IMG/VR virus record: IMGVR_UViG_3300047157_000197
Span: 124,001 to 188,000 of that record
Length of the DNA stretch: 64,000 nucleotides
Direction: 5' to 3' (one strand)
The notes under the pieces were generated by a model, which saw only the letters and a list, made by a program, of their open reading frames with translations, had not been told where the DNA came from and ran no database searches. How positions within the stretch are numbered: the stretch's first letter is position 1; the number at the start of each line of letters is the position of its first letter. This document shows, piece after piece, positions 6,001 to 27,160 of the stretch. The translations under genes and the position numbers were made by a program.

Positions 6001-6444
6001 GCATCACCATACTATAAATTTAAAGCAGGTGATATAGGAAGTACAAGTATTTCATTAGCAGGTGGAAAAACTGCAACATTAGCAGCAACAGTAAGTGGTT
6101 CTGATTTAAATACAGCAATATCTGCATCAGCTGGAGCTATGAGTTGGGCAGGTGGAGTACAAACAATTATAGTTTTCCCAAGTGGTTCATCAATGTTAGG
6201 TGTACCTACATCTATGACAGATGGATTTGGTGGAAGTACGACTGGAGAGTATGTTTTAGTAGAATATGCAGATGGAACGAGTGCACCTTTAGGAGCTTCA
6301 CCAACAGTAATACAATCTATTGTGTTAGATTCAACAAAAGATGGGTTTGATGAGTGGAATGTAATAGGAACAGTAGGACAGAACTCAGCAACAACAATGA
6401 GATTAAAAGTAATTGCAAGTAGTGGTTCACTTGGAGATTTTTAA
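1..6444 (+). CDS. Giant Ser/Thr-rich virion structural/adhesin protein with tandem cadherin-like (Ig) domains; 5'-truncated by the window (>2100 aa)
   Basis: Frame 1 appears open from base 1 (TITSGSNIIT...) into ORF 2092..6444, so the TTG at 2092 is not the true start. Cadherin-like motifs (ATDPEGQAL, DNEGDTI, DTESD), a GDLWW fibre motif near 1610 and many ISGSSQ repeats. Confidence 0.7.
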   Translation, partial: TITSGSNIITITSTASGGGGSNESLNSFTASYYTDSSSFDSRIVGISASGSGADWNTNLQNIPNGIISGSIQILGGTDIISSSAQISSLGFLTSSHTDISSLNDYTASNDLRLTNLESTTSSLDTRITQLSDTTGSYETIGRGIISSSEQFPSGIVSSSVQILGGTGILSGSHSDLSSLNTYTSSTDERLSNIEAATGSYLTSDSDSQTLSISGDQLTISSGNVVTIPTGSSAVEGTISGSQQITDLGFISSSHTDVTHLNTFTSSIQTEVDALSAATSSYLTSETDSQTLSISGDQLTISSGNTITIPSGSSGTTDYTQLTNVPSGLVSGSSQVDYDVLTGGKGLLSGSHTDISSLNDYTSSTDTRLSGIDSITSSLEQRVSEIESNTGSYDDLTNITHLNTFTSSYYTDSASFDTQISTEKGRIDNILSGANADYDQFVEIVNLVNSTDTENDTAFANHYTSSRQRLTALETFTSSIDTSIKSKLDSDGVFSGSLVAGENITINVDGSNYIISSSASGGSSSVTVSDSAPSSPSQGDLWWKSDDGNLYVYYDGYWVISLDTTSTLPSGVISGSSQLTSSYDTRYSLSGSSGVSDYTDLTNIPTNIISGSQQITDLGFISSSHTVIDSLNTFTSSIQTEVNAISAQTSSYLTELPDGLVSGSVLRTLGGTGVLSGSKTDISSLNVFTSSIQTEVDGLSSFTSSYLTEIPAGTISGSSQLTSSYDTRYALSGSGGGGDTDFDGNRIVSQEKLPTMFSSSFNPGTSGSVVDFLNAVFYPNSDPAISSGNQTISEYSSSGSPIFTLEATDPEGQALTFGTGSTYTDDLVRVASNGVVTLNAVPTSASFNTDLVGGSHGHTFIAKTTDTFNSSIEKDITIFVTPNSTPVFRETSTSGNVITSVTSNLNESSADNTLLKRVFFTDANGDSITIHSSSIDGNHFEVIKSSTYVDILQNTGSLNYEEQTTYNFSISASDEHYELGQDSDSIAVLPITVNVTDNLVPTISNQSLSSINENSSDGTTVGTISAADNEGDTITFANFTLYKLELDNVNVSSGSYGGTSQLTDPHENPFQMSSSGVVTRKVGIFLNSDLINEYQYTVQVKDSYNESSNPAIITIPITDDTPAIISDNWSAGPYIKESEENGTTIKTTNYGSSTADYNSNQSGTFTSSNPAIVINGSGNLSLGVDLSGSVTQSDDSLDSVITFTNTFGTITTDNLNVDIVHNHHPSASFTLQNSNLNTNLATTNTNLVLVSITDTEGDTPYSASLSGTDAGKLNLNYTNSNSSSLYIRANENLSAGTITYNLRVSDSYSEVSDYIGNTISINQTDTGTLGGDTTSHIIESARNNDSLRDATGFEGGNTSQLTVSYSGSDGTPSVQSFTSSNPSIDIDSSGNLTLAVDISGSLTSSGDTISSDITFQDNYGNVGSGSLTVNVFGNSHPSASFTNNSGVYNTNQATSSALMVSLTITDEESDTPFSMSLSGTDANKFNIESQNSNTSSIQLTAVSDLDSGTYSYTASVFDQFSEVSQYEREITIAEADLGTLSTNGTFYVIESAVNGNNIVTNSNGRTGTQGDLGVSYSPNYGSQVVQEFTSSNAFVSVNSSGNLSVGTNISGSSETSGDSITSNITWADQHGNVGSGSISVNVTTNNAPTTSSVSTQFENTNQATGSVEVLELTISDTESDSMPNSGLTWSSYNSTYFTPSVSTPNMRLNANNISVPSGTYPWEVTLKDEHGFNTRVVSGSLVITQADTGTLGGDTTSYIIESALSGDVLRDATGFNNGNPSDLDVSYSPSYGSPSVQSFTSSNPAILVNSSGALTLGVNLSGSVTQSGDTINSDITFQDEYGNIGSGSVTLTVFGNQSPAASFVSSSNYEADNATNGSTAGLVTVSDTESNSPFTLTIGGTHGSSFQVSGSSSPFTIQPNTSLSAGTYTIDITVADSYSESVTLSNETITVDASANNGEIYIYYSNFGSNAGFSANYNGVMGASTVNSDSPPQVTAYTANTASPYYKFKAGDIGSTSISLAGGKTATLAATVSGSDLNTAISASAGAMSWAGGVQTIIVFPSGSSMLGVPTSMTDGFGGSTTGEYVLVEYADGTSAPLGASPTVIQSIVLDSTKDGFDEWNVIGTVGQNSATTMRLKVIASSGSLGDF

Positions 6445-10403: not shown

Positions 10404-13400
10404 ATGGCAGTTTATACATTAAAATTTAGAAGAGGTACGACAATACCTTCATTAGTAGAATCAGAACCGTTCTTTAAAACAGATAGTGATACCTTACATA
10501 TAGGAGATGGGTCATCAAGTATTACTTTAGTAAAACTTGGTTCGAATACTGGTGACATTAATTTTACTGGCGATATCACTGCATCAAATATATCAGTTAC
10601 CAATGACTTAACAATTGGTGGTAATATTATTTTAGGAAACGAAATTCAAGATAATATAACAGTATCAGGACAATTTGATTCTGATTTAATCCCATCTGCA
10701 TCAGCACTTTACGATATAGGTTCTAGCACAAAAAAATGGAAAAAGATTTTTGCGGTTTCTGCATCATTTGATAATTTATCATTAGATGGAACAGGAGTTT
10801 TATCAGGTTCAGACCAATTAACAGGTTCTTTTTTAGAAATAGGTGGTGATAATGTATTTAGTGGGTCATCACAAGTAAATGCAGATTCAATTACAAACTT
10901 TGATTCAAATGTAAAAGCAAAATTAGATACTGAAACAGTAATTAGTGGTTCATCACAAGTTTCTTATGTAGGACTTTCAAACATACCAAGTAATATTGTA
11001 TCAGGTTCATCACAAGTTTCTTATGTAGGACTTTCAAACATACCAAGTGGCATCGTTAGTGGTTCATCACAAATAACAATTACCGAATCTCAAATTTCGG
11101 ATTTATCACATACAGATATAAGTTCACTAAACACTTATACTGGTTCAAACAATACAACCCAATCAATACAAAATTCTAGATTAGACCAACTTTCAACTGA
11201 AACTGGTTCTATTACTACTGAACAAGGAATACAAGATTCAAGATTAGACCAACTTTCAACTGAAACAGGTTCTATCACATCAGAACAATCAGTTCAAGAC
11301 CAACGATTAGGTGCTATTGAAGCAGATAGTGGTTCTTATTTAAAAACTGTTGATATTTCAACTGATACAAATTTAGCTGTAAGTGATACTTCACAAGTTG
11401 ATATGATTTTAACTGGTGATACTCTATCAGCAAACTTAAAGGGTGGTGTTGTATCTGGTTCAATCCAAATATTAGGTGGAAGTACAATTCTTTCATCATC
11501 AAATGAAAACTTTAATGGATTCTCATCTTCAATAGATAGTAGATTAGATACAATTGAAGGACCTCTTTCTACATCAATAGATAGTAGATTAGATTCATTA
11601 GAATCTGATACACATACACATTCAAACAAATCCACACTTGATGGAATTAATCAAGGATTATCAACATCGGATAATGTAACTTTTGCAGATGGAGATTTTA
11701 CAGGTGATGTTCAAGTAACTGGTAATTTAACAGTATTAGGTTCTGCAGTTGAAATTTCTTCAACAGAATTAAGTATTGAAGATAAATTAATTACAGTTGC
11801 AAGTGGTTCTGCAGATTCTGCAGCATCAGATGGTGCTGGTATTGAAATAGCAGGAGCAAATAAATCATTAAAATGGGACCATAACACAACTTCTTTCGTA
11901 TTAGATGCAAAAGTAAGTTCATCAGTAGGATTTAAAGGAGATGGTTCAGAATTAACTGGAGTAACTGCAGCATCTGTTGGTTATTCAAACATTACATCAA
12001 TACCAAGTGGTATTGTAAGTGGTTCATCTCAAATAGTATATAATAGTGTTTCATCAATACCAAGTGGTATTGTAAGTGGTTCATCGCAAGTAAATGCTGA
12101 TTCAATTACAAACTTTGATGAAAATGTAAAACAGAAAATGACTGATGAGGTTGCTCATAGTGGTTCATTCTTAGGAACTGCAACAACTACTCATTTAGAT
12201 GAGGGTGGTAATCTTTATTGGACAGAAACAAGATTTAGTGAATCACTTGATGATAGAGGAGTAATTAGTGGTTCCTCTCAAACATTAGAAATATTAAATT
12301 CTTTAAATTCATATACATCTTCAAACGATACAATAAATACAACTCAGAATACAAGATTAGACCAACTTTCAACTGAAACTGGTTCTATTACTACTGAACA
12401 ATCAGTTCAAGACCAAAGATTATCAGCAATTGAAGCAGATAGTGGTTCTTATTTAAAAACTGTTGATATATCGAGTGATACAAACTTAGCAGTATCAGAT
12501 AGTGCGAATATAGATATGATTTTAACCGATGATACTCTATCAGCAAACTTAAAAGGTGGTGTTGTATCTGGTTCTGAACAACTAAGTAGTACTTTCCTAT
12601 CAAAACTTGGAGATAATGTGTTAAGTAGTTCTGCATTTAGTTCTCCATCACAAGGAACGATTCGAGCAACAATTAATGGAGTAAATTCTGATGTAGATAG
12701 TGGATTACAAATAACAGATTCACCATCGTTCAATGCATTATCATTAAGTTCACTTTCAGAAATAGCTGGTAGTCAATTTAGTGCTTTATTTGTAAGTTCA
12801 TCAAACCTAATAGGTAAACGAGATTTAGGTACAAGTGCTTTTTTACATTATTCAAATTCTATTGATGATGGTAACTCACAAGTAATTGGTACTGCACAGG
12901 CAGTTAAAAATTATGTAGATGCTCAATTTATAGAAGCCGGTGCAGGTGATATTACAGAAGTAGTTGCAGGTAATGGTTTAAGTGGAGGAGCACAGACTGG
13001 TTCTGCAACTCTTACAATAGATACAGGTTCAGCTCACTTCTTAGGTGGAGTTTCAGCAGCTGGAGCACCTACAGGAACAGTTTCAGGTTCTCAACAAGTA
13101 ATTGACCATTTACCAACTGGTACTGTTAGTGGTTCATCGCAAATAACAATAACAGAATCACAAATAAGTGATTTAGACCATTATACTGATTCAGATGTAA
13201 AACTTAAATTAGATGCAGATGGAGTAATTAGTGGTTCATCTCAACTTTATAGTGATTTAGATTTACGATATAATAACGAACTTGGAGAAGGTATAATTAG
13301 TGGTTCATCACAAGTTGATGTAACTGCAACAACTAATTATTCTTCAATAAATCAATATTCTGATTCAAAGGTAAAACTTAAATTAGATGCAGATGGTGTA

Positions 13401-15566
13401 ATTAGTGGTTCATCTCAAATAACAATAACAGAATCTCAGATTTCTGATTTATCTCACTATACTGATGCTAATGTAAAAACTAAATTAGATTCAGAAGGTG
13501 TAATTAGTGGTTCATCACAAATAGACCACGATTCAACTACAAACTTTGTAGCAAACGAACATATTGACCACTCAAGTATTACAATTGGTAGTGGTAAGGG
13601 TTTAACTGGTGGTGGTACTATTGATACAAATAGAAGTTTATCATTAGATACTGGTTCAGTACACTTTAACGAGGGTGTAGTAACTAATCTAATATCTTTA
13701 AACTCATATACTTCATCAAACGATATAGATATAACAGAATTATTTGCATCTTCTTCGGACCATGAAGGAAGAATCGATACTTTAGAGGGAGAGGCTCATG
13801 AAAATCCACTTACTTTTAATGATACTACTCAAGTTGATTTAATTAGAGCAGGTAATGTAATTACTGCAAATCTTAAAGGTGGAGTAATAAGTGGTTCATC
13901 TCAAGTAGATGTTGCTTCAACTACAAACTACTCTAGTATTAATCAATATAGTGATGCAAAAGTAAAAACAAAATTAGATGCAGAAACAGTAATAAGTGGG
14001 TCATCTCAAGTAATTGATTTTGTTACCAATGGTGATTTAGATATGGGTGGTAATAAAGTTCTCTTTGGGAATGTTTATTCAAGTGAAGGAGATTTACCAA
14101 CCGCAAGTACATATCATGGTATGTTTGCTCATGTTCATGGAACTGGCAAAGGATATTATGCACATGGTGGTAATTGGATAAAACTTATAGATGAAAGTTC
14201 ATCAGATACCAATGATTTATCAGAAGGTTCTTCAAATCTTTATTATACAGATGCAAGAGTAAAAACAAAATTAACTGCAGAAGAAGTTGTTAGTGGTTCA
14301 GCTTCAGATGTAAAATCGTTCTTATCCATATCCTCATCGGATATTTCTGATGTTGAAGCGTTCTCACAAAGTGGAACATATGCAAGTTTAAGAGCACAAG
14401 CAACAACTGCAACTGATGTTGGATTAGGAAATGTAACAAACGAATCTAAAGCAACTATGTTTACATCAGCTGCTCTAACATCCAATCCAACCGCACCAAC
14501 TCAAGCTGGTAGTGATGATTCTACTAAAATTGCAACAACTGCGTTTGTTCAAGATAGAATAGAAACAGTTATTGGTAGTGCAGGTTCTACATTAGATACT
14601 TTGGGTGAACTTTCTGCTTCTTTAGCAGATGATTCTGGTTCACTTGCAAGTTTAGTAACAGAAGTAGGAACAAAATTAGCAAAGGCATCTAACTTATCAG
14701 ATTTAGCAGATGCATCAACTTCAAGAACAAACTTAGGAGTTGAAATTGGAACAGATGTACAAGCTTATAACGCAACACTAGCTGCTGTTGCCGATAGTAC
14801 TTATACTGGTGATAATGCAATTACAACATTAGGAACAATCGGAACAGGTGTATGGGAAGGTACTGCAATTAATCAAACTTACTTAAATGGACAAAGTGGA
14901 ACCAACACAGGTGATGAATCAGATGCAAGTGTAACAGTCAAAGGTATTGTAGAATTAGCAACTACTGCTGAAACAACTACTGGTACTGATGCAACAAGAG
15001 CAGTAACACCTGATGGATTGAAGGATGGTTACCAAGGTTCAACTAATGTAGATACTCTTGGTACAATTACGAGTGGTACATGGAATGGTAGTGTAATCGC
15101 ATCGGCTTATTTAGATTCTGATACTGCACACCTAAGTGGAACACAAACATTTAGTGGAGCTAAAACATTCTCTAACACAACTGCATCAACAAGTAAAACT
15201 GAAGGAGCAGTTATAGTGACTGGTGGTGTAGGTATTGGTGGAACATTGAATGTAGGTGGTGATGTTGTAGCATACGCATCATCAGATGAAAGATTAAAAA
15301 ATAATATTCAACCGATTAAAAACCCAATAGAAAAAATAAATTCAATTTCTGGTAACAGTTTTAGTTGGAATGAGGAAAAACAAGATATTTATAAAGGTAA
15401 CGATTACGGTGTAATTGCTCAGGAAATTGAAAAAATATTACCAGAACTTGTAGATACTCGTGATGATGGTTATAAAGCCGTAAAATATGATAAATTAATA
15501 TCACTATTAATTGAAGGTATCAAAGAGTTATCAAGTGAAGTAACTAAATTAAAAGAAAAAAACTAG
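10404..15566 (+). CDS. Long tail fibre protein with C-terminal intramolecular chaperone (peptidase S74)
   Basis: C-terminal SSDERLKNNI...YGVIAQEIE...VKYDKLISLLIEGIKEL; N-terminal LKFRRG; 14 SGSSQ repeats by my count; PTAPT/KIATTAFV fibre motifs. Confidence 0.8.
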   Translation: MAVYTLKFRRGTTIPSLVESEPFFKTDSDTLHIGDGSSSITLVKLGSNTGDINFTGDITASNISVTNDLTIGGNIILGNEIQDNITVSGQFDSDLIPSASALYDIGSSTKKWKKIFAVSASFDNLSLDGTGVLSGSDQLTGSFLEIGGDNVFSGSSQVNADSITNFDSNVKAKLDTETVISGSSQVSYVGLSNIPSNIVSGSSQVSYVGLSNIPSGIVSGSSQITITESQISDLSHTDISSLNTYTGSNNTTQSIQNSRLDQLSTETGSITTEQGIQDSRLDQLSTETGSITSEQSVQDQRLGAIEADSGSYLKTVDISTDTNLAVSDTSQVDMILTGDTLSANLKGGVVSGSIQILGGSTILSSSNENFNGFSSSIDSRLDTIEGPLSTSIDSRLDSLESDTHTHSNKSTLDGINQGLSTSDNVTFADGDFTGDVQVTGNLTVLGSAVEISSTELSIEDKLITVASGSADSAASDGAGIEIAGANKSLKWDHNTTSFVLDAKVSSSVGFKGDGSELTGVTAASVGYSNITSIPSGIVSGSSQIVYNSVSSIPSGIVSGSSQVNADSITNFDENVKQKMTDEVAHSGSFLGTATTTHLDEGGNLYWTETRFSESLDDRGVISGSSQTLEILNSLNSYTSSNDTINTTQNTRLDQLSTETGSITTEQSVQDQRLSAIEADSGSYLKTVDISSDTNLAVSDSANIDMILTDDTLSANLKGGVVSGSEQLSSTFLSKLGDNVLSSSAFSSPSQGTIRATINGVNSDVDSGLQITDSPSFNALSLSSLSEIAGSQFSALFVSSSNLIGKRDLGTSAFLHYSNSIDDGNSQVIGTAQAVKNYVDAQFIEAGAGDITEVVAGNGLSGGAQTGSATLTIDTGSAHFLGGVSAAGAPTGTVSGSQQVIDHLPTGTVSGSSQITITESQISDLDHYTDSDVKLKLDADGVISGSSQLYSDLDLRYNNELGEGIISGSSQVDVTATTNYSSINQYSDSKVKLKLDADGVISGSSQITITESQISDLSHYTDANVKTKLDSEGVISGSSQIDHDSTTNFVANEHIDHSSITIGSGKGLTGGGTIDTNRSLSLDTGSVHFNEGVVTNLISLNSYTSSNDIDITELFASSSDHEGRIDTLEGEAHENPLTFNDTTQVDLIRAGNVITANLKGGVISGSSQVDVASTTNYSSINQYSDAKVKTKLDAETVISGSSQVIDFVTNGDLDMGGNKVLFGNVYSSEGDLPTASTYHGMFAHVHGTGKGYYAHGGNWIKLIDESSSDTNDLSEGSSNLYYTDARVKTKLTAEEVVSGSASDVKSFLSISSSDISDVEAFSQSGTYASLRAQATTATDVGLGNVTNESKATMFTSAALTSNPTAPTQAGSDDSTKIATTAFVQDRIETVIGSAGSTLDTLGELSASLADDSGSLASLVTEVGTKLAKASNLSDLADASTSRTNLGVEIGTDVQAYNATLAAVADSTYTGDNAITTLGTIGTGVWEGTAINQTYLNGQSGTNTGDESDASVTVKGIVELATTAETTTGTDATRAVTPDGLKDGYQGSTNVDTLGTITSGTWNGSVIASAYLDSDTAHLSGTQTFSGAKTFSNTTASTSKTEGAVIVTGGVGIGGTLNVGGDVVAYASSDERLKNNIQPIKNPIEKINSISGNSFSWNEEKQDIYKGNDYGVIAQEIEKILPELVDTRDDGYKAVKYDKLISLLIEGIKELSSEVTKLKEKN
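10947..11048 (+). repeat. In-frame 57-bp-period tandem duplication (SGSSQVSYVGLSNIPS x2)
   Basis: 45 identical nt starting at 10947 and again at 11004. Confidence 0.8.
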
Positions 15567-16273: not shown

Positions 16274-19200
16274 ATGATTATACATAATCCCAAGATATCA
16301 GGTTCATTACAATTCCCATCAGATGAGAATGGCAATTTAATAACCTTTCAAGTACAGAATGGTACTCTTGAAACCATAACCTTAAACTCAAGTGGAGTTG
16401 ACCAAGGAATACAACCAGCTGTTAATTATTCTGGTTCATTCACAGGTTCATTTGTTGGAGATGGTTCAAGTTTAACTGGTGTAGCCGCAAGTGGTTTTAA
16501 CATTGATATTTTAGATGCCGTTGGTGGTGCTTCAGTCGAACAATCTGATACATTTCTTATTAGTGATGCTGGAACTGAAAAGAAAATAACATTCTCAAAC
16601 ATAGAAGATTCAATATTTGCAAATGTAAGTGGAGATGTTAGTGTTGCTGCCGGTGGTGTTGCAACTCTTAATAGAGCTGGAGTAATATCTGGTTCTGCTC
16701 AAATTACAGCATTAGGATTTTCTACTACTGATAATGAATTAACTACTGAAGAAGTTCAAGATATAGTAGGTGGAATGGTAAGTGGTAATACCGAAAGTGG
16801 TATTAGTGTTACTTATGATGATACTGGTAATTCATTAGATTTCTCAGTTACATCACAAACAGAAAATGATTTTACAACTGTATTAAAAGATAAACTAGAT
16901 GGAATTGCTGCATCGGCAAACAATTATGCATTACCAACTAACTTAGCTGGTGATGATATAGATATTGATACAACTGCATTAAGTGGAGCAACTGTAATAT
17001 CAGATTTAGACCTTAACATAACAACAAATACAAGTGGATTAGTAACAGATGCAAATGGTAGTATTTCAACAAGAGATTTAACACCAAGTGATTTAGGATT
17101 AGGAAATGTAGATAATACTTCTGATGCTAACAAACCAGTATCAACTGCTCAACAAACAGAAATTGATACCAAAGCTGATATTGCTTCACCAGCATTAACT
17201 GGTAATCCAACTGCACCAACACAAGCTGATAACGATAACTCAACTAAAATCGCAACAACTGCGTATGTACAAAGAGAAGTATCTGATTTATTAGGTGGTG
17301 CACCCGCAGCGTTTGATACATTATTAGAAATTTCTGCAAGTATTGCAAATGGGGATAGTGATGTAGTTGCATTAACAACAACAGTAGGTGGAAAACTACA
17401 AAAAGACCAAAACTTAAGTGATTTAACAAATGCTTCAACTGCAAGAACTAACTTAGGAGTTGCAATTGGTTCAGATGTACAAGCATTTAATTCAACATTG
17501 GCAACTGTTGCTGGTGGAACATATGCTGGTGATAACTCAATAGTAACAATAGGTACTGTAACCACAGGTGATGTACAAACAATATTACCAAGTGGAGTTG
17601 TATCTGGTTCATCTCAAGTACAAGCATTAGGTGGTGTTAATGATAATACAATTACATTTACTGCAGGTGCAGGATTAGATGGTGGTGGTGCAATAACACT
17701 TAACCAAGGTTCAGATGAAACAGTAACATTTACAGTAGGTGATGGAGTTATAAGTGGTTCATCACAAGTAAGTGGTATAACAAATACTCAATTAGCTGGT
17801 TCAATAGCTAATTCAAAATTATCAAATTCAAGTATAACAATAGATGGTTCGGCTATCTCACTAGGTGGTTCAGTAACAACTTTACAATTAGGTTCAACTT
17901 CATCAACTGCACTTGCAGGTGATACTACAACTATTAGTGGTGGACAAGCTTCAGCAATTACTGCTAATACTGCTAAAGTTGGATATACTGATGCACTTGT
18001 AAAATCAAAATTAGATACAGAAGCAGTACTTAGTGGTTCAATTACATCAGCTGATATTTCTGATGTTGCTGCGTTCTCACAAAGTGGTACATATAGTGGA
18101 TTAAGAGCTCAAGCAACTACTGCTGGTGATGTTGGATTAGGAAATGTAACAAATGAAAGTAAAGCAACGATGTTTACATCAGCTGCTTTAACAAGTAACC
18201 CAACTGCACCAACTCAAACTGGTACAGATGATTCTACTAAAATAGCAACAACTGCTTTCGTACAAGATAGAATAGATACAATTATAGGAAACGCTGGTTC
18301 AACTTTAGATACTTTAGGTGAACTTTCAGCTTCTTTATCTGATGATGAAGATGCACTAACTTCTTTAACCACAACTGTTGGTACTAAGTTAGCAAAGGCA
18401 TCTAACTTATCTGATTTAGCAAATGCTGGAACTGCTAGAACAAACTTAGGTGTAGATGCAGCAGGAACTGATAATTCAACAGATGTAACTTTAGCTGGTA
18501 ACGATTACTTAACTATAAGTGGACAAGAAATTACTGCAGGTGCTATAAACAATGATGATTTAACAAATTCATCAATTACAATAGATGGTTCAGCTGTTTC
18601 ATTAGGTGGTTCAATTACAACAAATAACACACAATTATCAACAGAAGCAGTTCAAGATATAGTAGGTGGAATGGTAAGTGGTAATACTGAAAGTGGTATT
18701 ACAGTAACTTATGATGATGCTGGCAATTCATTAGATTTCTCAGTTGCATCTCAAACAGACGAAAACTTTACTACAGCTGACCATTCTAAATTAGATGGTA
18801 TCGAAACAGGTGCTACAGCGGACCAATCTGCATCAGAAATAAGAACTTTAATAGGAACTGGTAATGGGAATTTAGTACCAGCGGAAGGAACAGCCGGTCA
18901 TTTCTTAAAACATGACGGTACATTTGGTTTACCATCTTATACTACAAATACAGATACAAACACACAACTAACACAAGAACAAGTTGAAGATTTCGTAGGT
19001 GGAATGTTAGATGGAACAGAAACAGGAATTACTGTTGGATATGATGATACTAATGGTAACCTTGATTTCGTAGTTGCAACTCAATCTGATAACAACTTTA
19101 CAACTGCTTTAAAAAATAAATTAGATGGTATTGAAGCATCTGCAGATGTAAACGTTGTTACAAGTGTAGCAAGTAAAACAGGAGATGTTTCTTTAGTAAA

Positions 19201-20194
19201 AGGAGATGTAGGTTTAGGAAATGTAGATAATACTGCAGATTCTGCTAAACCAGTTTCAACTGCACAACAAACTGCATTGGATTTGAAAGCTAATTTGGCT
19301 TCTCCTACATTTACAGGAACACCAATATCAACAACACCAAGTGCTAATGATGATTCTACAAAAATAGCAACTACTGCTTATGTACAAGCAGAACTTACAG
19401 AGTTAATTGGTACTGCACCAGCAACATTAGATACATTAGGAGAAATTTCAGCAAGTATTGCAAATGGAGATTCGGATGTAGTTGCTTTAACTACAACAGT
19501 TGGAACAAAGTTAGCTAAAGCAAGTAACTTATCTGATTTAGCAAACGCATCAACTGCAAGAGGTAATCTAGGTGTAGATGCAGCAGGAACTGATAACTCA
19601 ACTAATGTAAGTTTAACTGGTACACCTGATTATATAACAATAAGTGGACAAGTAATTACAAGAAATCAAATTGATTTAGCAAATGATGTAACAGGTGTGT
19701 TACCATCGGCTAATTTAGATTCAGATACGGCACACTTAAGTGGAACACAAACATTTAGTGGTGCTAAATCATTCTCCTCAGCTGTTAACATAGATGCAAC
19801 AACTGCATCAACAAGTAAAACTGAAGGAGCATTAATTGTAGATGGTGGTGTAGGTATCGCAGGAGCATTAAACGTAGGTGGAGATGTTGTAGCATACGCT
19901 TCTTCGGATGAAAGATTAAAAGATAATATAGAACTTATTTCTAATCCAATTGAAAAAGTACAATCACTTAAAGGTGTTACTTGGAATTGGAATGATAATG
20001 CAGATGAGTTACAACAATCATTACCAAATGTTGGTGTAATTGCACAAGATGTTGAGAAAGTTCTACCACAGTTGGTAACTGATAGAGATAATGGATTTAA
20101 GGGTGTAGATTATGCTAAACTTACTGGATTACTTATCGAAGCAGTTAAAGACCAACAAAAACAGATTGATGAATTGAAGAATAAACTATCTTAA
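16274..20194 (+). CDS. Tail fibre protein with C-terminal peptidase S74 chaperone
   Basis: SSDERLKDNI...VGVIAQDVE...VDYAKLTGLLIEAVKD; repeats GLGNVDNT(S/A)D..KPVSTAQQ and PTAPT. Confidence 0.8.
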   Translation: MIIHNPKISGSLQFPSDENGNLITFQVQNGTLETITLNSSGVDQGIQPAVNYSGSFTGSFVGDGSSLTGVAASGFNIDILDAVGGASVEQSDTFLISDAGTEKKITFSNIEDSIFANVSGDVSVAAGGVATLNRAGVISGSAQITALGFSTTDNELTTEEVQDIVGGMVSGNTESGISVTYDDTGNSLDFSVTSQTENDFTTVLKDKLDGIAASANNYALPTNLAGDDIDIDTTALSGATVISDLDLNITTNTSGLVTDANGSISTRDLTPSDLGLGNVDNTSDANKPVSTAQQTEIDTKADIASPALTGNPTAPTQADNDNSTKIATTAYVQREVSDLLGGAPAAFDTLLEISASIANGDSDVVALTTTVGGKLQKDQNLSDLTNASTARTNLGVAIGSDVQAFNSTLATVAGGTYAGDNSIVTIGTVTTGDVQTILPSGVVSGSSQVQALGGVNDNTITFTAGAGLDGGGAITLNQGSDETVTFTVGDGVISGSSQVSGITNTQLAGSIANSKLSNSSITIDGSAISLGGSVTTLQLGSTSSTALAGDTTTISGGQASAITANTAKVGYTDALVKSKLDTEAVLSGSITSADISDVAAFSQSGTYSGLRAQATTAGDVGLGNVTNESKATMFTSAALTSNPTAPTQTGTDDSTKIATTAFVQDRIDTIIGNAGSTLDTLGELSASLSDDEDALTSLTTTVGTKLAKASNLSDLANAGTARTNLGVDAAGTDNSTDVTLAGNDYLTISGQEITAGAINNDDLTNSSITIDGSAVSLGGSITTNNTQLSTEAVQDIVGGMVSGNTESGITVTYDDAGNSLDFSVASQTDENFTTADHSKLDGIETGATADQSASEIRTLIGTGNGNLVPAEGTAGHFLKHDGTFGLPSYTTNTDTNTQLTQEQVEDFVGGMLDGTETGITVGYDDTNGNLDFVVATQSDNNFTTALKNKLDGIEASADVNVVTSVASKTGDVSLVKGDVGLGNVDNTADSAKPVSTAQQTALDLKANLASPTFTGTPISTTPSANDDSTKIATTAYVQAELTELIGTAPATLDTLGEISASIANGDSDVVALTTTVGTKLAKASNLSDLANASTARGNLGVDAAGTDNSTNVSLTGTPDYITISGQVITRNQIDLANDVTGVLPSANLDSDTAHLSGTQTFSGAKSFSSAVNIDATTASTSKTEGALIVDGGVGIAGALNVGGDVVAYASSDERLKDNIELISNPIEKVQSLKGVTWNWNDNADELQQSLPNVGVIAQDVEKVLPQLVTDRDNGFKGVDYAKLTGLLIEAVKDQQKQIDELKNKLS

Positions 20195-22035: not shown

Positions 22036-23031
22036 ATGTATGATGTGTATTATACTACTGGTGGTGGCCCTTGGGTAAATGCTGGTACTGATACTTGGGT
22101 TAATTTATGGATGGAATTGATTGCTCCTAAATTAGATGTAAAACCTATTCTTCTTTTACACAGAAACAAACCAAAAGGACATAAAGATTATGAATTTCCT
22201 ATTGAAGCACATTGGCATGGAGATAATATAGAAAAGTTTGAGGAACTATGTAAAGGAGCAAGGAGAATCAATATATTACATGGTCATTATACTCCAATGA
22301 AAGTGATAGAAGAAAATAAACATAAAATTCATTCGAATATTTTACATAATTCAGTAGACCATATAATAAAAACACAATTTGGAACAGATGCTTCATTTAT
22401 ACAACATCCTTATATGGATTCGGTGTGGGAAATTGATATTAACAAAATTGCAACACATTCTATTTGGGTTGGTGTATATGATATTTTAATAAAAAACAAA
22501 AATATACCTAATTTTTACGAATTTAAACATAATTTAAAATTATCCGAATCAAATAAAATTGGATTTACTGCTAGAAGTGAGGGTAGAAAGAATCCACGAT
22601 ATTTAGATGGATTACCATCGTTGTTATTTACAGATTCAAAAGCTTTTAATGTATTATGGAAAGGTGGTATGAAAATGGATACTTCTAAAATAAAAGTGTA
22701 TCACTACAAACCTAATTTCAAAAATGTTTTTTATAATATGAATTGGGGAATATCACATTCATGTTTTACACACGAACCATTTGGTTATTCTATATTTGAA
22801 GCAGTAGATTATGGTAAATTACCAATATTACATACATCTTGGTGTAAAGATTTAAATTATCCATATAGAGCTTCATCTAAAAAAGAATTTAATCATATTT
22901 ATATGAGGTTAAGTAAAACTACATATTCAGAAAAAAATAAATGGTTTGACTTATTAAAAAAGTATATGATTGAAAATTATACTAATAAAGATAGGTGGAT
23001 TAATCAATTACTTAATATTTATAATATATAG
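22036..23031 (+). CDS. Glycosyltransferase (GT-B, GT4-like)
   Basis: FTARSEGRKNP and EPFGYSIFEAVDYGKLPI (EX7E motif of GT4 enzymes); N-terminal GGG..NAGTDTW. Confidence 0.7.
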   Translation: MYDVYYTTGGGPWVNAGTDTWVNLWMELIAPKLDVKPILLLHRNKPKGHKDYEFPIEAHWHGDNIEKFEELCKGARRINILHGHYTPMKVIEENKHKIHSNILHNSVDHIIKTQFGTDASFIQHPYMDSVWEIDINKIATHSIWVGVYDILIKNKNIPNFYEFKHNLKLSESNKIGFTARSEGRKNPRYLDGLPSLLFTDSKAFNVLWKGGMKMDTSKIKVYHYKPNFKNVFYNMNWGISHSCFTHEPFGYSIFEAVDYGKLPILHTSWCKDLNYPYRASSKKEFNHIYMRLSKTTYSEKNKWFDLLKKYMIENYTNKDRWINQLLNIYNI

Positions 23032-23043
23032 GGAAAAGTATAT

Positions 23044-24363
23044 ATGGCAATTTCAGCAGGAGAAACACTCAGTTTAAATAATTTAGCAGGAGCAACTGGT
23101 AATACACAAGGTGCAAATGTATCATTAGGTACAATTAAAGGTTCACCTGTAGCGGGTGATAATATTACATTATCTTCATATGGTGTAGATGCAATAGGTT
23201 CTTTGACGGGATATACTTATGCTGTTGAATCTACAAACGAAACTTACACATTAGGATTTACAGGCGAGGGTGCCAAGTTTAGTTCACAGATAAAAACAAA
23301 TTCAGATAATTTTACATGGGCAGTAACCCCAGCATATAATATGAATACAGATTCTGCAGGATATTTAAGTATTGCTTCAAATTCAGATTATACTGGTGTA
23401 ATTACAGTTGGTTCTATGAATCCACAAGGTGTTGGTTCACAAACAACTTTAGCTGGAAATGTATCACATACATTATCGGTAACATTTGCTGATGGATTCA
23501 ATACCCATGCTACAAATTATAATAGTGCAAGAACTAAAACTGTTTATTCAGTAGATTCTTATGATGGAAATTCAACCGCATTATGTTTAGTTATTGATTC
23601 ACCCGTAACACTTGCAGATGGTTCAATTGTAGAAGTTGGTGATTTAGAAGAAGGAGATGAACTAAGAGGATTTTCTATTGGTGGTTTAGGAACTGATGAA
23701 GCTGGTTTTTTAGATTGGGATACTGATTCATTATCAACAACAGCACAAAATGTAACTGTTGAAAATTTAGTATATTCGTTTTCTAATAGACATTATGATA
23801 TAAATGATGGTGAAATAAAAGCAACATCAGAACACCCTATGTTAGTTAAAGATGCATCAGATGGTAATTATAGATTTAAAGAAATGTTCAATATATCAAC
23901 TGATGATAAATTAATAAAAGAAATTGATAGTGTTATTACTGAAGTAGATATTACTTCAATTGAAATAGTTAGTCAAACTAATGAAATTGTTTCAATTGAT
24001 GTTGAAACAAATGATACATATTTAGTTAATGGATATATAACACACAACAAAGGTGGAAATTCACATACCGATGAAACAGCAGGTAGTGCACCAACTTCAT
24101 TAGCATGGACAAATGGTACATTAACTCTTTCATGGAGTGGTGATGGTACAAATGATGTATTTGATGTACAAATAGATAATAATTCAGATTTTAGTTCACC
24201 TCTTATAGATGAAACACAATGGTCTGAAACAACAGTAGTAACAACTACTGATGGTGGAGATTTCGATATTGGAACTGGTACAAGATATGCAAGAGTAAGA
24301 CAATATGGAACAAATGGATTATTAAGTGATTATAGTTCAACGTTAACATTTACTGTATCATAA
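23044..24363 (+). CDS. Virion protein with internal Hint (intein-like) domain and C-terminal FN3/Ig-like domain
   Basis: Hint from CLVIDSPVTLADG (23584) through ATSEHPM to YLVNGYITHN (24048); C-terminal APTSLAW...LSWSG...YARVRQY. Confidence 0.75.
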   Translation: MAISAGETLSLNNLAGATGNTQGANVSLGTIKGSPVAGDNITLSSYGVDAIGSLTGYTYAVESTNETYTLGFTGEGAKFSSQIKTNSDNFTWAVTPAYNMNTDSAGYLSIASNSDYTGVITVGSMNPQGVGSQTTLAGNVSHTLSVTFADGFNTHATNYNSARTKTVYSVDSYDGNSTALCLVIDSPVTLADGSIVEVGDLEEGDELRGFSIGGLGTDEAGFLDWDTDSLSTTAQNVTVENLVYSFSNRHYDINDGEIKATSEHPMLVKDASDGNYRFKEMFNISTDDKLIKEIDSVITEVDITSIEIVSQTNEIVSIDVETNDTYLVNGYITHNKGGNSHTDETAGSAPTSLAWTNGTLTLSWSGDGTNDVFDVQIDNNSDFSSPLIDETQWSETTVVTTTDGGDFDIGTGTRYARVRQYGTNGLLSDYSSTLTFTVS

Positions 24364-24430: not shown

Positions 24431-24736
24431 ATGGCGGAAGCAATTAAGTTTACAGAAGAAGAAGTTTCACAATTAAATCAATTAAGACAAGATGTAGCTG
24501 AAACTTTTACAAAACTTGGACAACTTCAAATCGAAAAGAAGAGAAGAATCGAAGAAGTTACTAAAGTTGAAGATGAATTATTACAAAAACATTCAAATTT
24601 GGTTCAACAAGAACAAGAGATTTTCAAAGGTTTAAATGATAAATATGGTGATGGAAATTACGACCCTACATCAAATACATTTATACCAAGCGAAACTAAA
24701 GAAGAAAAATCTATATCTAAAGAAAGTAAAAAATAA
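24431..24736 (+). CDS. Hypothetical coiled-coil protein
   Basis: 101-aa Glu/Lys/Gln-rich ORF after a late motif; KYGDGNYDP end. Confidence 0.6.
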   Translation: MAEAIKFTEEEVSQLNQLRQDVAETFTKLGQLQIEKKRRIEEVTKVEDELLQKHSNLVQQEQEIFKGLNDKYGDGNYDPTSNTFIPSETKEEKSISKESKK

Positions 24737-24808: not shown

Positions 24809-27160
24809 ATGGCAGAAAAAATTGTATCACCTGGGGTATTTACGAGAGAAAACGACCTTTCTTTCTTATCACAAGGGATTGGTGAAATAGGAGCAGCAAT
24901 AATTGGACCTTTCCATAAAGGACCTGCTTTTGTACCAACCGTTGTTAATACACAATCGGAATTTGAAGAAATATTCGGTACACCTGATGGTTCTTACTAT
25001 ACAGGATATACCGTACAAAACTACCTTAGAGAAGCAGGAACAGTAACTATTGTTCGTGTTGGTCATCAAGGTGGATATTCACAAGCTAAACCAATAGGAA
25101 TTGAAATAAGTGGTTCATCATCAGAAGGTGGAAGAAAATTAATCGGTGTTTTAAACGCAACACACAAGGGTTCTTTAACCGTTGGATTTCCTTCATGTTC
25201 TATTGATTCTACTGCAGGAGAATCCGTATTCAGTATTAGTGGTTCTAATATAGCAGCAGTATCAGCATCTGTACTACCAAGTGCAGGAAATGATATATCA
25301 GACGTATTTGGAAGTAACCCAAGAGGTTCTAAAAAAGCGTATGGAGCTCATTATTTTGAAAAAGCTGCAACTGATTTTACTGATTGGTTTCAAAGTGGTT
25401 CTCAAGTATTACACAGAGAATTAGCTACACAAGATTTTACACAAGATATTCAACATGCTTCTACTCCTTATATACAATCACAATTGATTTCAGGAGAAAG
25501 ACATGATTTATTTAGATTCCATACTTTAGGTGATGGTTCTAATTATAATAAAGAATACAAAATTGGTATCTTTAATGTAAAAGCTGCTGGTGCATCAAAT
25601 GCAACTGATTATGCAACTTTTTCAATTTCAATTAGAAAATATAGTGATACTAATAAAAGAACTAATGTACTTGAAACGTTTAGTAATGTAAACTTAGACC
25701 CTGCATCACCAAATTATATCAAGAAAAGAATTGGTGATAGAAATGTAACTATTGATGCTAATGGAAAACAATCTGAAAATGGTGATTATCCAAACTACTC
25801 GAAATTTGTTAGAGTAGAGTGTTCAGAAGAAGGTTCATTCCCAATTACTGCAGCACCATTTGGACATGGAGCATATACAAATCCAATATATCATGGAACG
25901 GATGAATCATTAATTCCATCGGTAATATTTTCAACAGGTTCGGAAAATAACAATTCTTCCAAATCAGCTGAGTATAGTGGTATTGATTTAGAATCTGCAG
26001 TTGTTAAAATTGACAACAGTAATTACTTATCTCCAATACCTGCTTCGGCAACAGTTGGTGGAAATACTGCTTTCTCATTCGATGCAGCATTTACTGCAAT
26101 CGTAACTGGTTCTGTTGGAACTAAAAACTTTGCATATACATTATCAACATCTGATACTCCTGCAATTATTAACAAAAGACAGTTTATCGTAGGATTCCAA
26201 AGTGGATTCGATGGTATATCACCAACAATCAAATCAGCTAAATATGGTGATTCTGATTGGGGTGCTGGAAACTCACAAGGATTTGATTTATCAACTTCAA
26301 CCGCTAATGGTTCAGTTGCGTATGTAAAAGCAATAAACTCAGTATCTAATCCAGATGATTTCGATATTAACTTAGTATCTGCACCAGGTGTAGTTAGAAG
26401 ATTACATTCTTATGTATTTGATAAAGTAGTTGATATGGTAGAAGCAAGAGAAGATGCATTCTTTATTGGTGATGCTAATGACGGTGGAGATACTATCGCT
26501 GAAGCAATTACACAAGGTGAAGCGGTTGATTCTAACTATGTAGGTACATACTACCCATGGGTTAAAACAATCGACAGAAACACTAATAAATTAACTGCAG
26601 TTCCACCATCAGTATTGATGCCAGGAATATATGCAGCAAATGATGCTATCGCAGCAGAATGGTTTGCACCTGCAGGTTTAAACAGAGGTGGTATCGTAGG
26701 AGCTGTTTCTGTATTAAATAGATTGACACATGCTGAAAGAGATTCTTTATATGAAGGTAAAATTAATCCAATCGCTCAATTCCCAGGAGAGGGTATTGTT
26801 GCTTTCGGACAAAAAACTTTACAAGATAAAGCATCAGCACTTGATAGAATTAACGTAAGAAGATTAATGATTAAAGTTAAGAAGTATATCGCTTCAACTT
26901 CAAGATACTTAGTATTCGAACAAAATACTTCACAAACAAGAAGTAGATTCTTAAATACTGTGAATCCTTATTTAGAAGGAATACAACAAAGACAAGGATT
27001 GTATGCTTTTAGAGTAGTGATGGACGAAAGTAATAACACACCAGATGTTATCGACAGAAATATATTGGCTGGACAGATTTTCTTACAACCAACAAAAACT
27101 GCTGAATTTATCGTGTTAGACTTTAACATATTACCGACTGGAGCATCATTCTCGGCATAA
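24809..27160 (+). CDS. Contractile tail sheath protein
   Basis: N-terminal SPGVFTREND; C-terminal WFAPAGLNRG, INPI, GQKTLQ, DRINVRRL, QPTKTAEFIVLDF. Confidence 0.95.
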   Translation: MAEKIVSPGVFTRENDLSFLSQGIGEIGAAIIGPFHKGPAFVPTVVNTQSEFEEIFGTPDGSYYTGYTVQNYLREAGTVTIVRVGHQGGYSQAKPIGIEISGSSSEGGRKLIGVLNATHKGSLTVGFPSCSIDSTAGESVFSISGSNIAAVSASVLPSAGNDISDVFGSNPRGSKKAYGAHYFEKAATDFTDWFQSGSQVLHRELATQDFTQDIQHASTPYIQSQLISGERHDLFRFHTLGDGSNYNKEYKIGIFNVKAAGASNATDYATFSISIRKYSDTNKRTNVLETFSNVNLDPASPNYIKKRIGDRNVTIDANGKQSENGDYPNYSKFVRVECSEEGSFPITAAPFGHGAYTNPIYHGTDESLIPSVIFSTGSENNNSSKSAEYSGIDLESAVVKIDNSNYLSPIPASATVGGNTAFSFDAAFTAIVTGSVGTKNFAYTLSTSDTPAIINKRQFIVGFQSGFDGISPTIKSAKYGDSDWGAGNSQGFDLSTSTANGSVAYVKAINSVSNPDDFDINLVSAPGVVRRLHSYVFDKVVDMVEAREDAFFIGDANDGGDTIAEAITQGEAVDSNYVGTYYPWVKTIDRNTNKLTAVPPSVLMPGIYAANDAIAAEWFAPAGLNRGGIVGAVSVLNRLTHAERDSLYEGKINPIAQFPGEGIVAFGQKTLQDKASALDRINVRRLMIKVKKYIASTSRYLVFEQNTSQTRSRFLNTVNPYLEGIQQRQGLYAFRVVMDESNNTPDVIDRNILAGQIFLQPTKTAEFIVLDFNILPTGASFSA

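Follow-up and report, generated by a model that had tools for sequence, protein, structure and literature searches.

The Hint fold is familiar from inteins, from the processing domains of hedgehog proteins and from bacterial BILs; what it does in phage virion proteins has received little attention. Type-A BILs keep the terminal His-Asn and have no +1 nucleophile; they can splice via a freed amino group and mostly cleave (PMC4031507; PMC7664689). The BIL2 domain of Tetrahymena is reported to form an isopeptide bond between the epsilon-amine of a lysine and a C terminus, K(epsilon-NH2)-C-terminus (PMC8616854). Here we describe a Hint domain in a tail-module protein of a marine jumbo myophage, in which the residue after the terminal Asn is an invariant lysine, and compare it with these systems.

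Results

The Hint domain is carried by a 439-aa protein encoded in the window, the whole 64,000-nucleotide stretch that was analysed, which derives from a 276-kb marine phage (Table 1). The source is a marine jumbo myophage, and the protein is a conserved member of its tail module. Its gene belongs to a fixed block comprising a GT-B glycosyltransferase, the Hint protein, a protein of roughly 99 aa, the tail sheath and the tail tube, and it occupies the same slot at loci L006, L008, L009 and L013. Tail fibres bearing Peptidase_S74 lie upstream (two in the window, at 10404-15566 and 16274-20194), and sheath, tube and baseplate genes follow downstream, a gene order that suggests a virion protein.

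The original prediction placed a 155-aa Hint at 23584-24051, a range that proved exact as the Hint plus the +1 Lys, and its Cys1, TxxH and His-Asn motifs were all located. Just before Cys1, the N-domain closes with a highly conserved D-S-Y-D-G-N-S-x-x-L, which in the window protein ends N-S-T-A-L; the N-domain is also found with other C termini (P0156, P0157). The homing endonuclease is absent, as predicted, the 155 aa aligning end to end with mini-inteins of 138-156 aa. The predicted C-terminal FN3 domain is borne out by a titin FN3 match in a family profile search (E 4.7e-6), by PF00041 in 15 of 43 homologues and by seven beta strands in the AF2 model.

Table 1. Features of the Hint-bearing gene and its neighbours in the window.
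Feature	Position	Strand	Evidence
331-aa GT-B-fold glycosyltransferase-like gene, directly upstream of the Hint gene	22036..23031	+	Foldseek, adjacency
Hint-bearing tail-module protein gene: N-domain, Hint, Lys linker, FN3	23044..24363	+	ORF list
N-extein, 180-aa N-domain: N-terminal motif M-A-x-S-x-G-E-T-L-S-L-N, then beta-sandwich	23044..23583	+	AF2 secondary structure
155-aa Hint domain of mini-intein size (Cys181 to Asn335), endonuclease-free	23584..24048	+	Foldseek, profile match to 2lwy, Pfam matches in homologues
Cys181 codon TGT, block A nucleophile, predicted N-S acyl shift site (Leu180-Cys181 bond)	23584..23586	+	Sequence, conservation
Block B T-S-E-H (Thr261, His264)	23824..23835	+	Aligns with T-F-D-H of BIL 2lwy
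His334-Asn335 (codons CAC AAC) of block G, where Asn cyclisation is predicted	24043..24048	+	Sequence, conservation
+1 Lys336 (AAA, 24049-24051) and conserved linker K-G-G-N-S-H-T-D	24049..24072	+	Sequence, conservation
FN3 domain at the C terminus (about residues 346-439), dispensable in orthologues	24079..24360	+	Titin FN3 match, PF00041 in homologues, model strands
101-aa coiled-coil-like protein, conserved, separating the Hint gene from the tail sheath gene	24431..24736	+	93-99-aa genes in the same slot at L006, L008, L009, L013
Tail sheath gene, context marker	24809..27160	+	PF04984, PF17482, phrog_23

The predicted Hint fold stood on structural grounds; the evidence from profile HMMs was thinner. 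Scans of the full-length protein against Pfam, PHROGs and PDB sequences returned no match. The Hint domain alone reached E=0.003 against PF14890, below the cut-off of that family, and 24.7 bits against TIGR01445 (intein_Nterm; cut-off 24.5), and HMM support from the window protein by itself is weak. Among the 43 homologues, however, PF14890 was found in 18 and PF07591 in 11 (E under 0.01). An AF2 model built from these homologues has a mean pLDDT of 81.7, with low-confidence junctions (pLDDT under 50 at residues 176-178 and 337-345). Foldseek with residues 181-335 of this model returned Tetrahymena BIL2 (6y75) as the best match (TMt 0.80, E 3e-9), together with the Ssp DnaB mini-intein (1mi8, TMt 0.81), the C. 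thermocellum BIL (2lwy, 0.80) and hedgehog (1at0, 0.74). A predicted Hint beta-fold with pseudo-twofold symmetry is thus well supported in the window protein. Searching the family profile against solved structures gave 2lwy as the best match (E 0.004), a remote relative at about 20% identity, and BIL2 at E 0.027. In fold and profile alike, the closest relatives among solved structures are BIL domains, and BIL-type chemistry, which had been proposed from the sequence, is probably the right frame.

At least 645 full-length homologues were found in marine metagenomes, on contigs of up to 524 kb. The domain had been called a non-canonical intein for its +1 lysine, and this holds throughout the family: His-Asn is followed by Lys in 120 of 120 listed homologues, and by Lys-Gly in all but one of them. 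Across the 43 aligned homologues, Cys181, Thr261, His264, Asp324, His334, Asn335, Lys336, Gly337 and H341 are invariant, with conservation of at least 90% at the linker positions G338, N339 and D343. Autoprocessing is a reasonable expectation, given that the catalytic residues are invariant in the 120 listed homologues. Mean pairwise identity is 59% for the Hint, 61% for the N-domain and 51% for the other flank, and the most conserved stretches are the junction flanks (84% for residues 165-180 on one side and 75% on the other). The Hint and its flanks evolve at the same rate.

No Hint-less allele was present among the 120 listed full-length matches or 35 N-domain matches, a search covering word-sharing relatives of 99-768 aa. 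Two 315-aa matches were considered as such alleles and rejected, since they have lost N-terminal sequence but retain the Hint. Searching with the N-domain only gave fragments at contig ends and two proteins whose C terminus differs, and no N-domain fused to FN3. With tblastn against isolated phages, only the Hint part was matched, in jumbo-phage proteins with C-terminal Hints, and no isolate contained an orthologue of the whole protein. By these comparisons the Hint is a fixed, domesticated domain and not a mobile intein.

We then compared the residue after the terminal Asn across related phage Hints, in a census of 143 domains from the 146 nearest clusters at 50% identity (the top 150 of 456 matches). 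Position 1 is Cys in 121 of 122 related domains, and the +1 residue is Cys, Ser or Thr in 4 of the 143 and Lys in 64. In most relatives the Hint lies strictly at the C terminus of a fibre- or adhesin-like protein with Collagen, Laminin_G_3, BACON or Calx-beta domains. Tails of 1-24 aa follow the Hint in 103 cases, and 102 of these 103 tails contain Lys; in 13 of them a lone Lys is the entire tail. The first Lys lies at +1 in 34 tails and at +4 to +6 in 46. A paralogue with a C-terminal Hint (G000, 78285-80801) has the tail A-K-G-G-A-P-P-G, and gp107 of Erwinia Alexandravirus, a cultivable relative, has T-D-I-V-A-K-A-E-K-K. Under nulls ranging from K=2.5% (elsewhere in these proteins) to K=13.4% (the last 10 aa of the ORFs of this phage), 17-60% of tails would be expected to contain Lys, and the excess reaches P of at most about 1e-26 when clusters are taken as independent, an overstated value since the clusters are related. 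Among the long ORFs of this phage, Lys is the last residue in 16%.

Lysine after the terminal Asn is therefore a near-universal mark of a large group of phage Hints, and apparently an undescribed one. In the searchable literature we found no description of a Lys-tailed phage Hint clade, nor of the Lys feature in BILs. Phage Hints appear under labels in databases, such as "Hint domain containing protein" and "large intein domain protein", and no study of them was found in that literature.

The C-terminal modules of the relatives vary, from FN3 to none to longer forms of up to 609 aa. The orthologue P0209 of locus L013, in the identical slot, lacks FN3 and ends HN-KGTF-stop. Because only K-G-T-F follows its Asn, the conserved unit is the N-domain, the Hint and the Lys. 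Release of FN3, originally put forward as a purpose of the reaction, is for this reason unlikely. Nor does the earlier view of the lysine as simply a missing nucleophile survive its invariance in the family and its presence in all but one of the short tails of the clade, which together point to the Lys itself as an acceptor or catalytic residue.

Discussion

We tentatively favour a reading in which the window protein carries a domesticated, catalytically intact type-A BIL-like Hint whose thioester would be resolved by a lysine amine. After folding, Cys181 would attack the carbonyl of Leu180 (N-S acyl shift) to give a thioester at Leu180-Cys181, cyclisation of Asn335 would break the Asn335-Lys336 bond, and the amine of the invariant Lys336 would resolve the thioester. 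Attack by the epsilon-amine would give an isopeptide, which in the window protein would link the N-domain to FN3 via a branched bond at Lys336; attack by the alpha-amine that Asn cyclisation releases would yield an ordinary peptide bond, the route put forward for type-A BILs. The net result would be self-excision of the Hint, leaving the N-domain joined to whatever comes after the Lys, namely FN3 in the window protein and a single Lys or a Lys-containing tail of 2-24 aa in relatives. Simple cleavage products would be expected as by-products. We infer that these reactions occur, their order and the attacking amine from the observed fold, motifs, invariance, fixation, context and lysine signature. 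Variable C-terminal modules would be readily understood if the reaction left them joined to the N-domain.

In a broader form, the phage Hint clade (at least about 100 50%-identity clusters) would carry out Lys-dependent splicing, in which an epsilon-amine at +1 or at +4 to +6 attacks the Cys1 thioester and the Hint departs, so that the structural protein would end in a domain, a peptide or a single Lys attached through an isopeptide bond. We regard this generalisation as doubtful, though worth stating.

Several observations count against the lysine as acceptor. The Lys could instead act in catalysis or through its charge, or simply be favoured close to stop codons; known type-A BILs chiefly cleave; and excising a C-terminal Hint while keeping a single Lys has no obvious purpose.

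The strongest alternative, which we nevertheless consider rather unlikely, is a self-removing Hint that only cleaves. Thioester hydrolysis would free the 180-aa N-domain and/or Asn cyclisation would free FN3, with the domain serving as a folding or assembly aid that is later shed, much as the S74 intramolecular chaperones on the long fibres of this phage do, and the Lys only tuning catalysis. Such an outcome would agree with the predominantly cleaved products of type-A BILs (PMC7664689, PMC4031507), and the C-terminal position of the Hint on the fibres of relatives is that of S74 on the fibres of the window. Hydrolysis has no need of a lysine, however, yet nearly all short tails contain one and some consist of nothing else. 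The persistence of FN3 and other variable C-terminal modules is also hard to see if they are cut loose, and N-terminal cleavage by itself poorly accounts for a His-Asn kept before a one-residue tail.

Transfer in trans, resembling the hedgehog reaction and also raised in the original prediction, is improbable in our estimate. Here the Leu180 thioester would be attacked by a Lys of another virion protein, giving covalent anchoring, or by a small molecule or sugar that the adjacent GT-B enzyme provides. Both Hedgehog and Tetrahymena BIL2 pass the N-extein to other nucleophiles (PMC7664689; for BIL2, PMC8616854). The genomic association fits: the GT-B-like gene lies directly upstream of the Hint gene in 7 of 7 loci examined (including L006-L009, L012 and L013), a second Hint protein of the same genome is adjoined by a GT-B paralogue to form a paralogous pair, and the Hint gene of one relative is located within a glycosylation cluster. 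The GT-B model, with a pLDDT of only 67.6, resembles BshA, an alpha-1,2-glucosyltransferase and T4 AGT in Foldseek (E 1.6e-5, TM 0.5-0.57). Complex prediction for the Hint protein and the glycosyltransferase scored 0.38 against 0.00 for the best control (run contact agreement at least 26%, partner pLDDT at least 79), a weak pass of a kind more often wrong than right, as scores of 0.60 or below were seen for 7 of 80 solved complexes and for 2 of 2 passing mismatches. Binding between the two proteins thus has weak support and is not claimed. A trans acceptor would leave the conserved cis Lys and the conserved terminal Asn unexplained, and the region after the Hint has no adaptor resembling the sterol-recognition region. 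The glycosyltransferase may also simply glycosylate the structural protein; phage glycosyltransferases adjoining structural genes commonly do so.

An inactive Hint, retained in the mature protein as an unreactive beta-rich spacer, is very unlikely. It would be in keeping with the absence of a canonical +1 nucleophile and with a window sequence below Pfam thresholds, but Cys1, the block B Thr and His, the block F Asp, His-Asn and the Lys are invariant in homologues 54-95% identical to the window protein, and the same residues are conserved across the clade at under 50% identity. A selfish mini-intein in decay after recent loss of the +1 nucleophile, a reading suggested by the intein-like size and motifs and by the further Hint domains elsewhere in this phage genome, is scarcely credible and, in its canonical form, was rejected, given a fixed Hint without presence/absence polymorphism among the matches listed, a Lys that is invariant and not drifting, divergence at the rate of the flanks, a host protein that is not a conserved housekeeping enzyme and orthologues almost devoid of a C-extein.

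The comparisons reveal a clade of phage Hints that are widespread, fixed and intact in their catalytic residues, in which a canonical +1 nucleophile is almost absent and a Lys following the terminal Asn is close to obligatory. If this Lys is the acceptor, the clade would represent natural Lys-directed protein ligation, with a bearing on intein mechanism, on fibre and tail maturation alongside S74 chaperones, and on ligation tools that do without a Cys, Ser or Thr scar. Splicing through the epsilon-amine would bring the nucleophile classes of intein-type splicing to four, and would be a novel mode of maturation for phage tail and fibre proteins. If the domains do no more than cleave, phage fibres would have, besides S74, another family of self-removing C-terminal modules, unrelated to the first.

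Comparison with known systems

Peptidase_S74 offers a functional analogy only. It is likewise a C-terminal self-cleaving module of phage fibres, two of which are encoded in the same window, but its fold and chemistry are unrelated, and it cleaves with a Ser-Lys dyad and no thioester.

Pretoxin HINT domains (PF07591) of polymorphic toxins, matched by 11 of the 43 homologues, also sit just before a variable C-terminal module. In the phage proteins, however, FN3 or a few residues follow in place of a toxin domain, and the context is a phage tail module. The window protein itself drew no PF07591 match at any E up to 10, and scanning this genome and control genomes yielded too few matches for a PT-HINT control of the +1 residue.

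The Hedgehog Hog domain (1at0) shares the Hint fold, a C-terminal location on an extracellular or structural protein and a thioester from which the N-terminal part is transferred. Hog has no terminal Asn and carries a sterol-recognition region, whereas the window Hint ends in His-Asn followed by a Lys-Gly-Gly linker and FN3.

Class 1 mini-inteins such as Ssp DnaB (1mi8) resemble the window Hint in fold, size and blocks A, B, F and G. Unlike them, the phage Hint has no +1 Cys, Ser or Thr, is not sporadic or mobile and does not reside in a conserved enzyme active site, and the C-extein of its relatives is as short as one residue.

With type-A BILs (2lwy), the window Hint shares the Cys1, terminal His-Asn and non-nucleophilic +1 residue that define them (PMC4031507), together with the TxxH motif, no endonuclease and a place in variable surface or structural proteins. 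Type-B BILs have no terminal His-Asn, which in the window Hint is present and invariant. The phage Hints depart from type-A BILs in their tail and fibre genes, their mostly extreme C-terminal position and their near-universal Lys after the Asn.

BIL2 of Tetrahymena thermophila BUBL1 (6y75 / 6tmm) is the best structural match, and its reported Lys epsilon-amine chemistry is that proposed for Lys336. BIL2 is eukaryotic, with ubiquitin-like exteins and Zn-linked activation, whereas the window protein has no ubiquitin-like domain and its putative acceptor Lys stands directly after the Asn, at +1.

A Hint domain recognised at the family level

The full 439-aa protein has no match in Pfam and PHROGs scans or among PDB sequences, and the domain alone reaches just E=0.003 against PF14890 in a profile scan and 24.7 bits against TIGR01445 (intein N-terminal region), right at the cut-off of 24.5. 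A word search of marine metagenomes finds at least 645 full-length homologues; scanned singly, 43 homologues show PF14890 in 18, PF07591 (pretoxin HINT) in 11 and fn3 in 15. The family profile matches the C. thermocellum bacterial intein-like domain (BIL) 2lwy (E 0.004), lining up T-S-E-H with T-F-D-H, and matches titin FN3 domains over residues 347-422. In an AlphaFold2 model built from 43 homologues (mean pLDDT 81.7), residues 181-335 match Tetrahymena BUBL1 BIL2 (6y75; Foldseek E 3e-9, TM 0.80 on target), the Ssp DnaB mini-intein (TM 0.81), 2lwy (0.80) and the hedgehog autoprocessing domain (0.74). The junctions are the lowest-confidence stretches of this model. The Hint domain of the original prediction is thus borne out, with weak single-sequence scans and the family-level profile and Foldseek matches deciding. 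Its residues and coordinates were exact (23584-24051 spans the 155-aa domain and the +1 Lys, directly after the terminal Asn), and it was right that a homing endonuclease is absent, since 155 aa is too short to hold one.

Features of the Hint gene, its neighbours and the other Hint proteins of the genome (a slash marks a Hint boundary)
Feature	Position	Strand	Details
Long fibres	10404-15566 and 16274-20194	+	1720 and 1306 aa; C-terminal Peptidase_S74 chaperone domains; upstream of Hint gene
331-aa GT-B-like gene	22036-23031	+	directly upstream of Hint gene in 7/7 loci (window, L006, L007, L008, L009, L012, L013)
Hint protein gene	23044-24363	+	ORF, 439 aa
Cys181	23584-23586	+	TGT, after N-S-T-A-L; translated bases
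Block B TxxH	23824-23835	+	T-S-E-H; translated bases
His334-Asn335	24043-24048	+	CAC AAC; translated bases
Lys336 (+1)	24049-24051	+	AAA, then G-G-N-S-H-T-D; translated bases
101-aa protein	24431-24736	+	Lys/Glu-rich, coiled-coil-like; kept between Hint and sheath genes in all related contigs (93-99 aa)
Second Hint protein	L004:1-1980 = G000:C1:78285-80801 (outside window)		839-aa frame; C-terminal Hint, end T-H-N/A-K-G-G-A-P-P-G-stop
Triple-Hint protein	L005:1-1779 = G000:C1:20724-23018 (outside window)		765-aa frame; three tandem C-terminal Hints

The Hint gene lies among fibre and tail genes

The virus genome is 275,970 bp long and rated complete, and the window covers its bases 124001-188000. 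Upstream of the Hint gene, a 572-aa fibre-like protein is encoded in addition to the two long fibres; downstream come the 101-aa protein and then genes for the sheath, a tube protein of gp19 type and a baseplate protein of T4 type. The sheath is most similar to those of Microcystis and Flavobacterium myophages. The block of 331-aa gene, Hint protein, ~99-aa protein, sheath, tube and baseplate repeats on contigs of 524, 286, 21 and 77 kb, with varying fibres upstream. With fibres, sheath, tube and baseplate around it, the predicted assignment to the virion stands as a sound inference from gene order. The structural proteins of this phage thus bear self-processing modules of two unrelated kinds, S74 and Hint. 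A reading frame of 2147 aa or more (1-6444) continues beyond the window's 5′ end and presumably encodes a giant structural protein. All long ORFs of the window are on the + strand, and cumulative GC skew climbs steadily. Overall GC is ~31%, and GC3 is extremely low (15-16% in the glycosyltransferase-like and sheath genes, lower still in the Hint gene).

Two further Hint proteins are encoded outside the window. The second has the N-terminal motif M-A-L-P-A-S-G-E-I-S-M-S, similar to that of the window protein. The triple-Hint protein has junctions V-H-N/A-P/C and A-H-N/R-E-S-L-P-C/C and a final V-H-N/K-stop; its first Hint apparently begins with Ala, not Cys, and its second is above the PF07591 cut-off (30.5 bits).

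The Hint is fixed in the protein

Cys1 and His-Asn-Lys are kept in 120/120 homologues listed (54-95% identical), with Gly next in all except one, and C181, T261, H264, D324, H334, N335, K336 and G337 are invariant in a 43-sequence alignment. Mean pairwise identity is 59% for the Hint, 61% for the N-domain and 51% for the C-terminal part; the junction flanks, at 84% and 75%, are the best-conserved segments. GC3 is alike extreme (6-11%) in Hint and flanks. With His-Asn-Lys kept throughout, flank-like identity and GC3, and no empty alleles found among the listed homologues or in an N-domain search, we conclude that the Hint is a fixed component of the protein and not a mobile intein.

A search with the N-domain only, reaching proteins of 99-315 aa, returned just fragments and two proteins whose C-terminus differs. 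Two 315-aa matches considered as empty (Hint-less) alleles are N-terminal truncations. The related proteins P0156 and P0157 (259-260 aa) have the N-domain at 27-30% identity, followed by a Cys/Gly-rich region and no Hint, so the N-domain is a module also found without Hint.

Lysine follows the terminal Asn across related Hints

Used as query in an exhaustive phmmer search, the domain matched 456 clusters (50% identity) at E <=1e-3, and the best 146 (about 150), phylogenetically not independent, were inspected. In these best 146 of 456 clusters, 143 Hint domains end in His-Asn. Of the 122 that are readable at position 1, 121 have Cys there; +1 is Lys in 64 of the 143 and Ser/Thr/Cys in 4, the remainder being Ala, Val, Ile or Pro. 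Within the same set, 103 domains sit at the extreme C-terminus of 145-1,583-aa proteins, leaving tails of 1-24 residues. Lys is present in 102 of these 103 tails; 13 are a lone Lys and 30 end with Lys. Given the Lys content of these proteins, 17% of tails would be expected to contain one, and even with the Lys content found in the final ten residues of the phage's own ORFs the expectation is 60% (P ~7e-27 with clusters taken as independent, which is overstated since they are related). Tails with another +1 residue, which are independent of the query's own Lys, carry a later Lys in 68 of 69 cases among the inspected clusters; the only tail lacking one belongs to a tandem pair, where it follows the second Hint and the first is followed by Lys. 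The first Lys of the short tails is bimodal, at +1 (34 tails) or +4 to +6 (46) and rare at +2, +3 and +7 onward, which suggests a geometric constraint on its placement.

Collagen repeats and domains of the ConA-like lectin, BACON, Calx-beta and fn3 types occur in the N-terminal parts of related proteins. Of the best ~150 of 456 clusters, a few were checked for phage origin. One protein is encoded on a 194-kb Tara contig that also carries gp32. The isolated jumbo phages NCTB (tail A-P-V-D-Q-K-H) and Erwinia Alexandravirus (gp107, T-D-I-V-A-K-A-E-K-K) conform to the pattern. In a FastTree phylogeny of 128 domains, rooted at the midpoint only, the 21 clusters of the window family group together as a clade (99% support) nested among short-tail C-terminal Hints; 20 of the 21 combine Lys at +1 with a long C-terminal part.

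Lys336 as a candidate acceptor

In type-A BILs, His-Asn is retained and no nucleophile stands at +1; the N-terminal thioester forms, Asn cyclises, and the freed amino group can ligate the flanks, although cleavage is dominant (PMC4031507, PMC7664689). Tetrahymena BIL2, the best fold match of the window Hint, is reported to link the N-extein C-terminus to a Lys epsilon-amine by an isopeptide bond (PMC8616854). For the window domain we tentatively propose, at somewhat less than even odds, self-excision in which an N-S acyl shift at Leu180/Cys181 and cyclisation of Asn335 would be accompanied by resolution of the thioester by an amine of Lys336, so that the N-domain would remain joined to the Lys-led piece. 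An alpha-amine is on hand with any +1 residue, and conservation of Lys at +1 or slightly later would therefore favour the side-chain amine.

The first-ranked alternative is cleavage only, in which the Hint would be a self-removing module analogous to S74; the dominance of cleavage in type-A BILs fits it, and the Lys conservation speaks against it. Here the original prediction saw release of FN3 as one purpose, and the evidence runs against it. The related protein P0209 (318 aa) shares the N-domain and Hint but stops at His-Asn/K-G-T-F, without FN3. In the orthologous slot that it occupies, it is preceded by a homologue (46% identical) of the 331-aa gene and followed by a 97-aa gene and those for sheath, tube and baseplate. 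Other close relatives have C-terminal parts of ~240-250 aa or 609 aa, or a different module. By sequence comparison, the conserved unit is N-domain, Hint and Lys, with FN3 dispensable, which argues against FN3 release being the point.

Transfer of the N-domain to an outside nucleophile, the prediction's other proposal, ranks second, and the glycosyltransferase-like neighbour could supply such an acceptor. Homologues of the 331-aa gene are 39% (L012) and 46% (L013) identical, and a 396-aa paralogue (31%) follows the second Hint protein at L004:2053-3243. The model of the 331-aa protein, from seven sequences, is of modest confidence (pLDDT 67.6) and resembles GT-B enzymes (BshA, alpha-1,2-glucosyltransferase and T4 alpha-glucosyltransferase; TM 0.5-0.57, E 1.6e-5), with which Atlas feature neighbours concur. 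In L012 the pair belongs to a glycosylation gene cluster that also encodes a UDP-glucose dehydrogenase, radical SAM enzymes, a methyltransferase and three family-7 glycosyltransferases. A predicted complex of the two proteins scores 0.38 against 0.00 for the best control (at least 26% of contacts shared, partner pLDDT at least 79), a level at which passes are wrong more often than right. The pairing probably reflects glycosylation of the Hint protein by the 331-aa product. An inert structural domain, ranked third, has the invariance of Cys181, Asn335 and Lys336 against it, and a decaying selfish intein comes last, the Hint being fixed.

Relation to known Hint systems

By fold and motifs, the window domain belongs to the HINT superfamily. 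Its location in phage tail/fibre genes, the predominantly C-terminal clade and the Lys signature appear to be new; we found no description of these three features in open-access text, and some proteins of the clade already carry the database label "Hint domain containing protein". Unlike a canonical intein, the domain has no nucleophile at +1 and no empty alleles were found. It differs from hedgehog autoprocessing domains in its terminal Asn and the lack of an adduct-recognition region, from type-B BILs in having His-Asn, and from pretoxin HINT in its setting, with no toxin domain following. The domain corresponds to the sequence definition of a type-A BIL.
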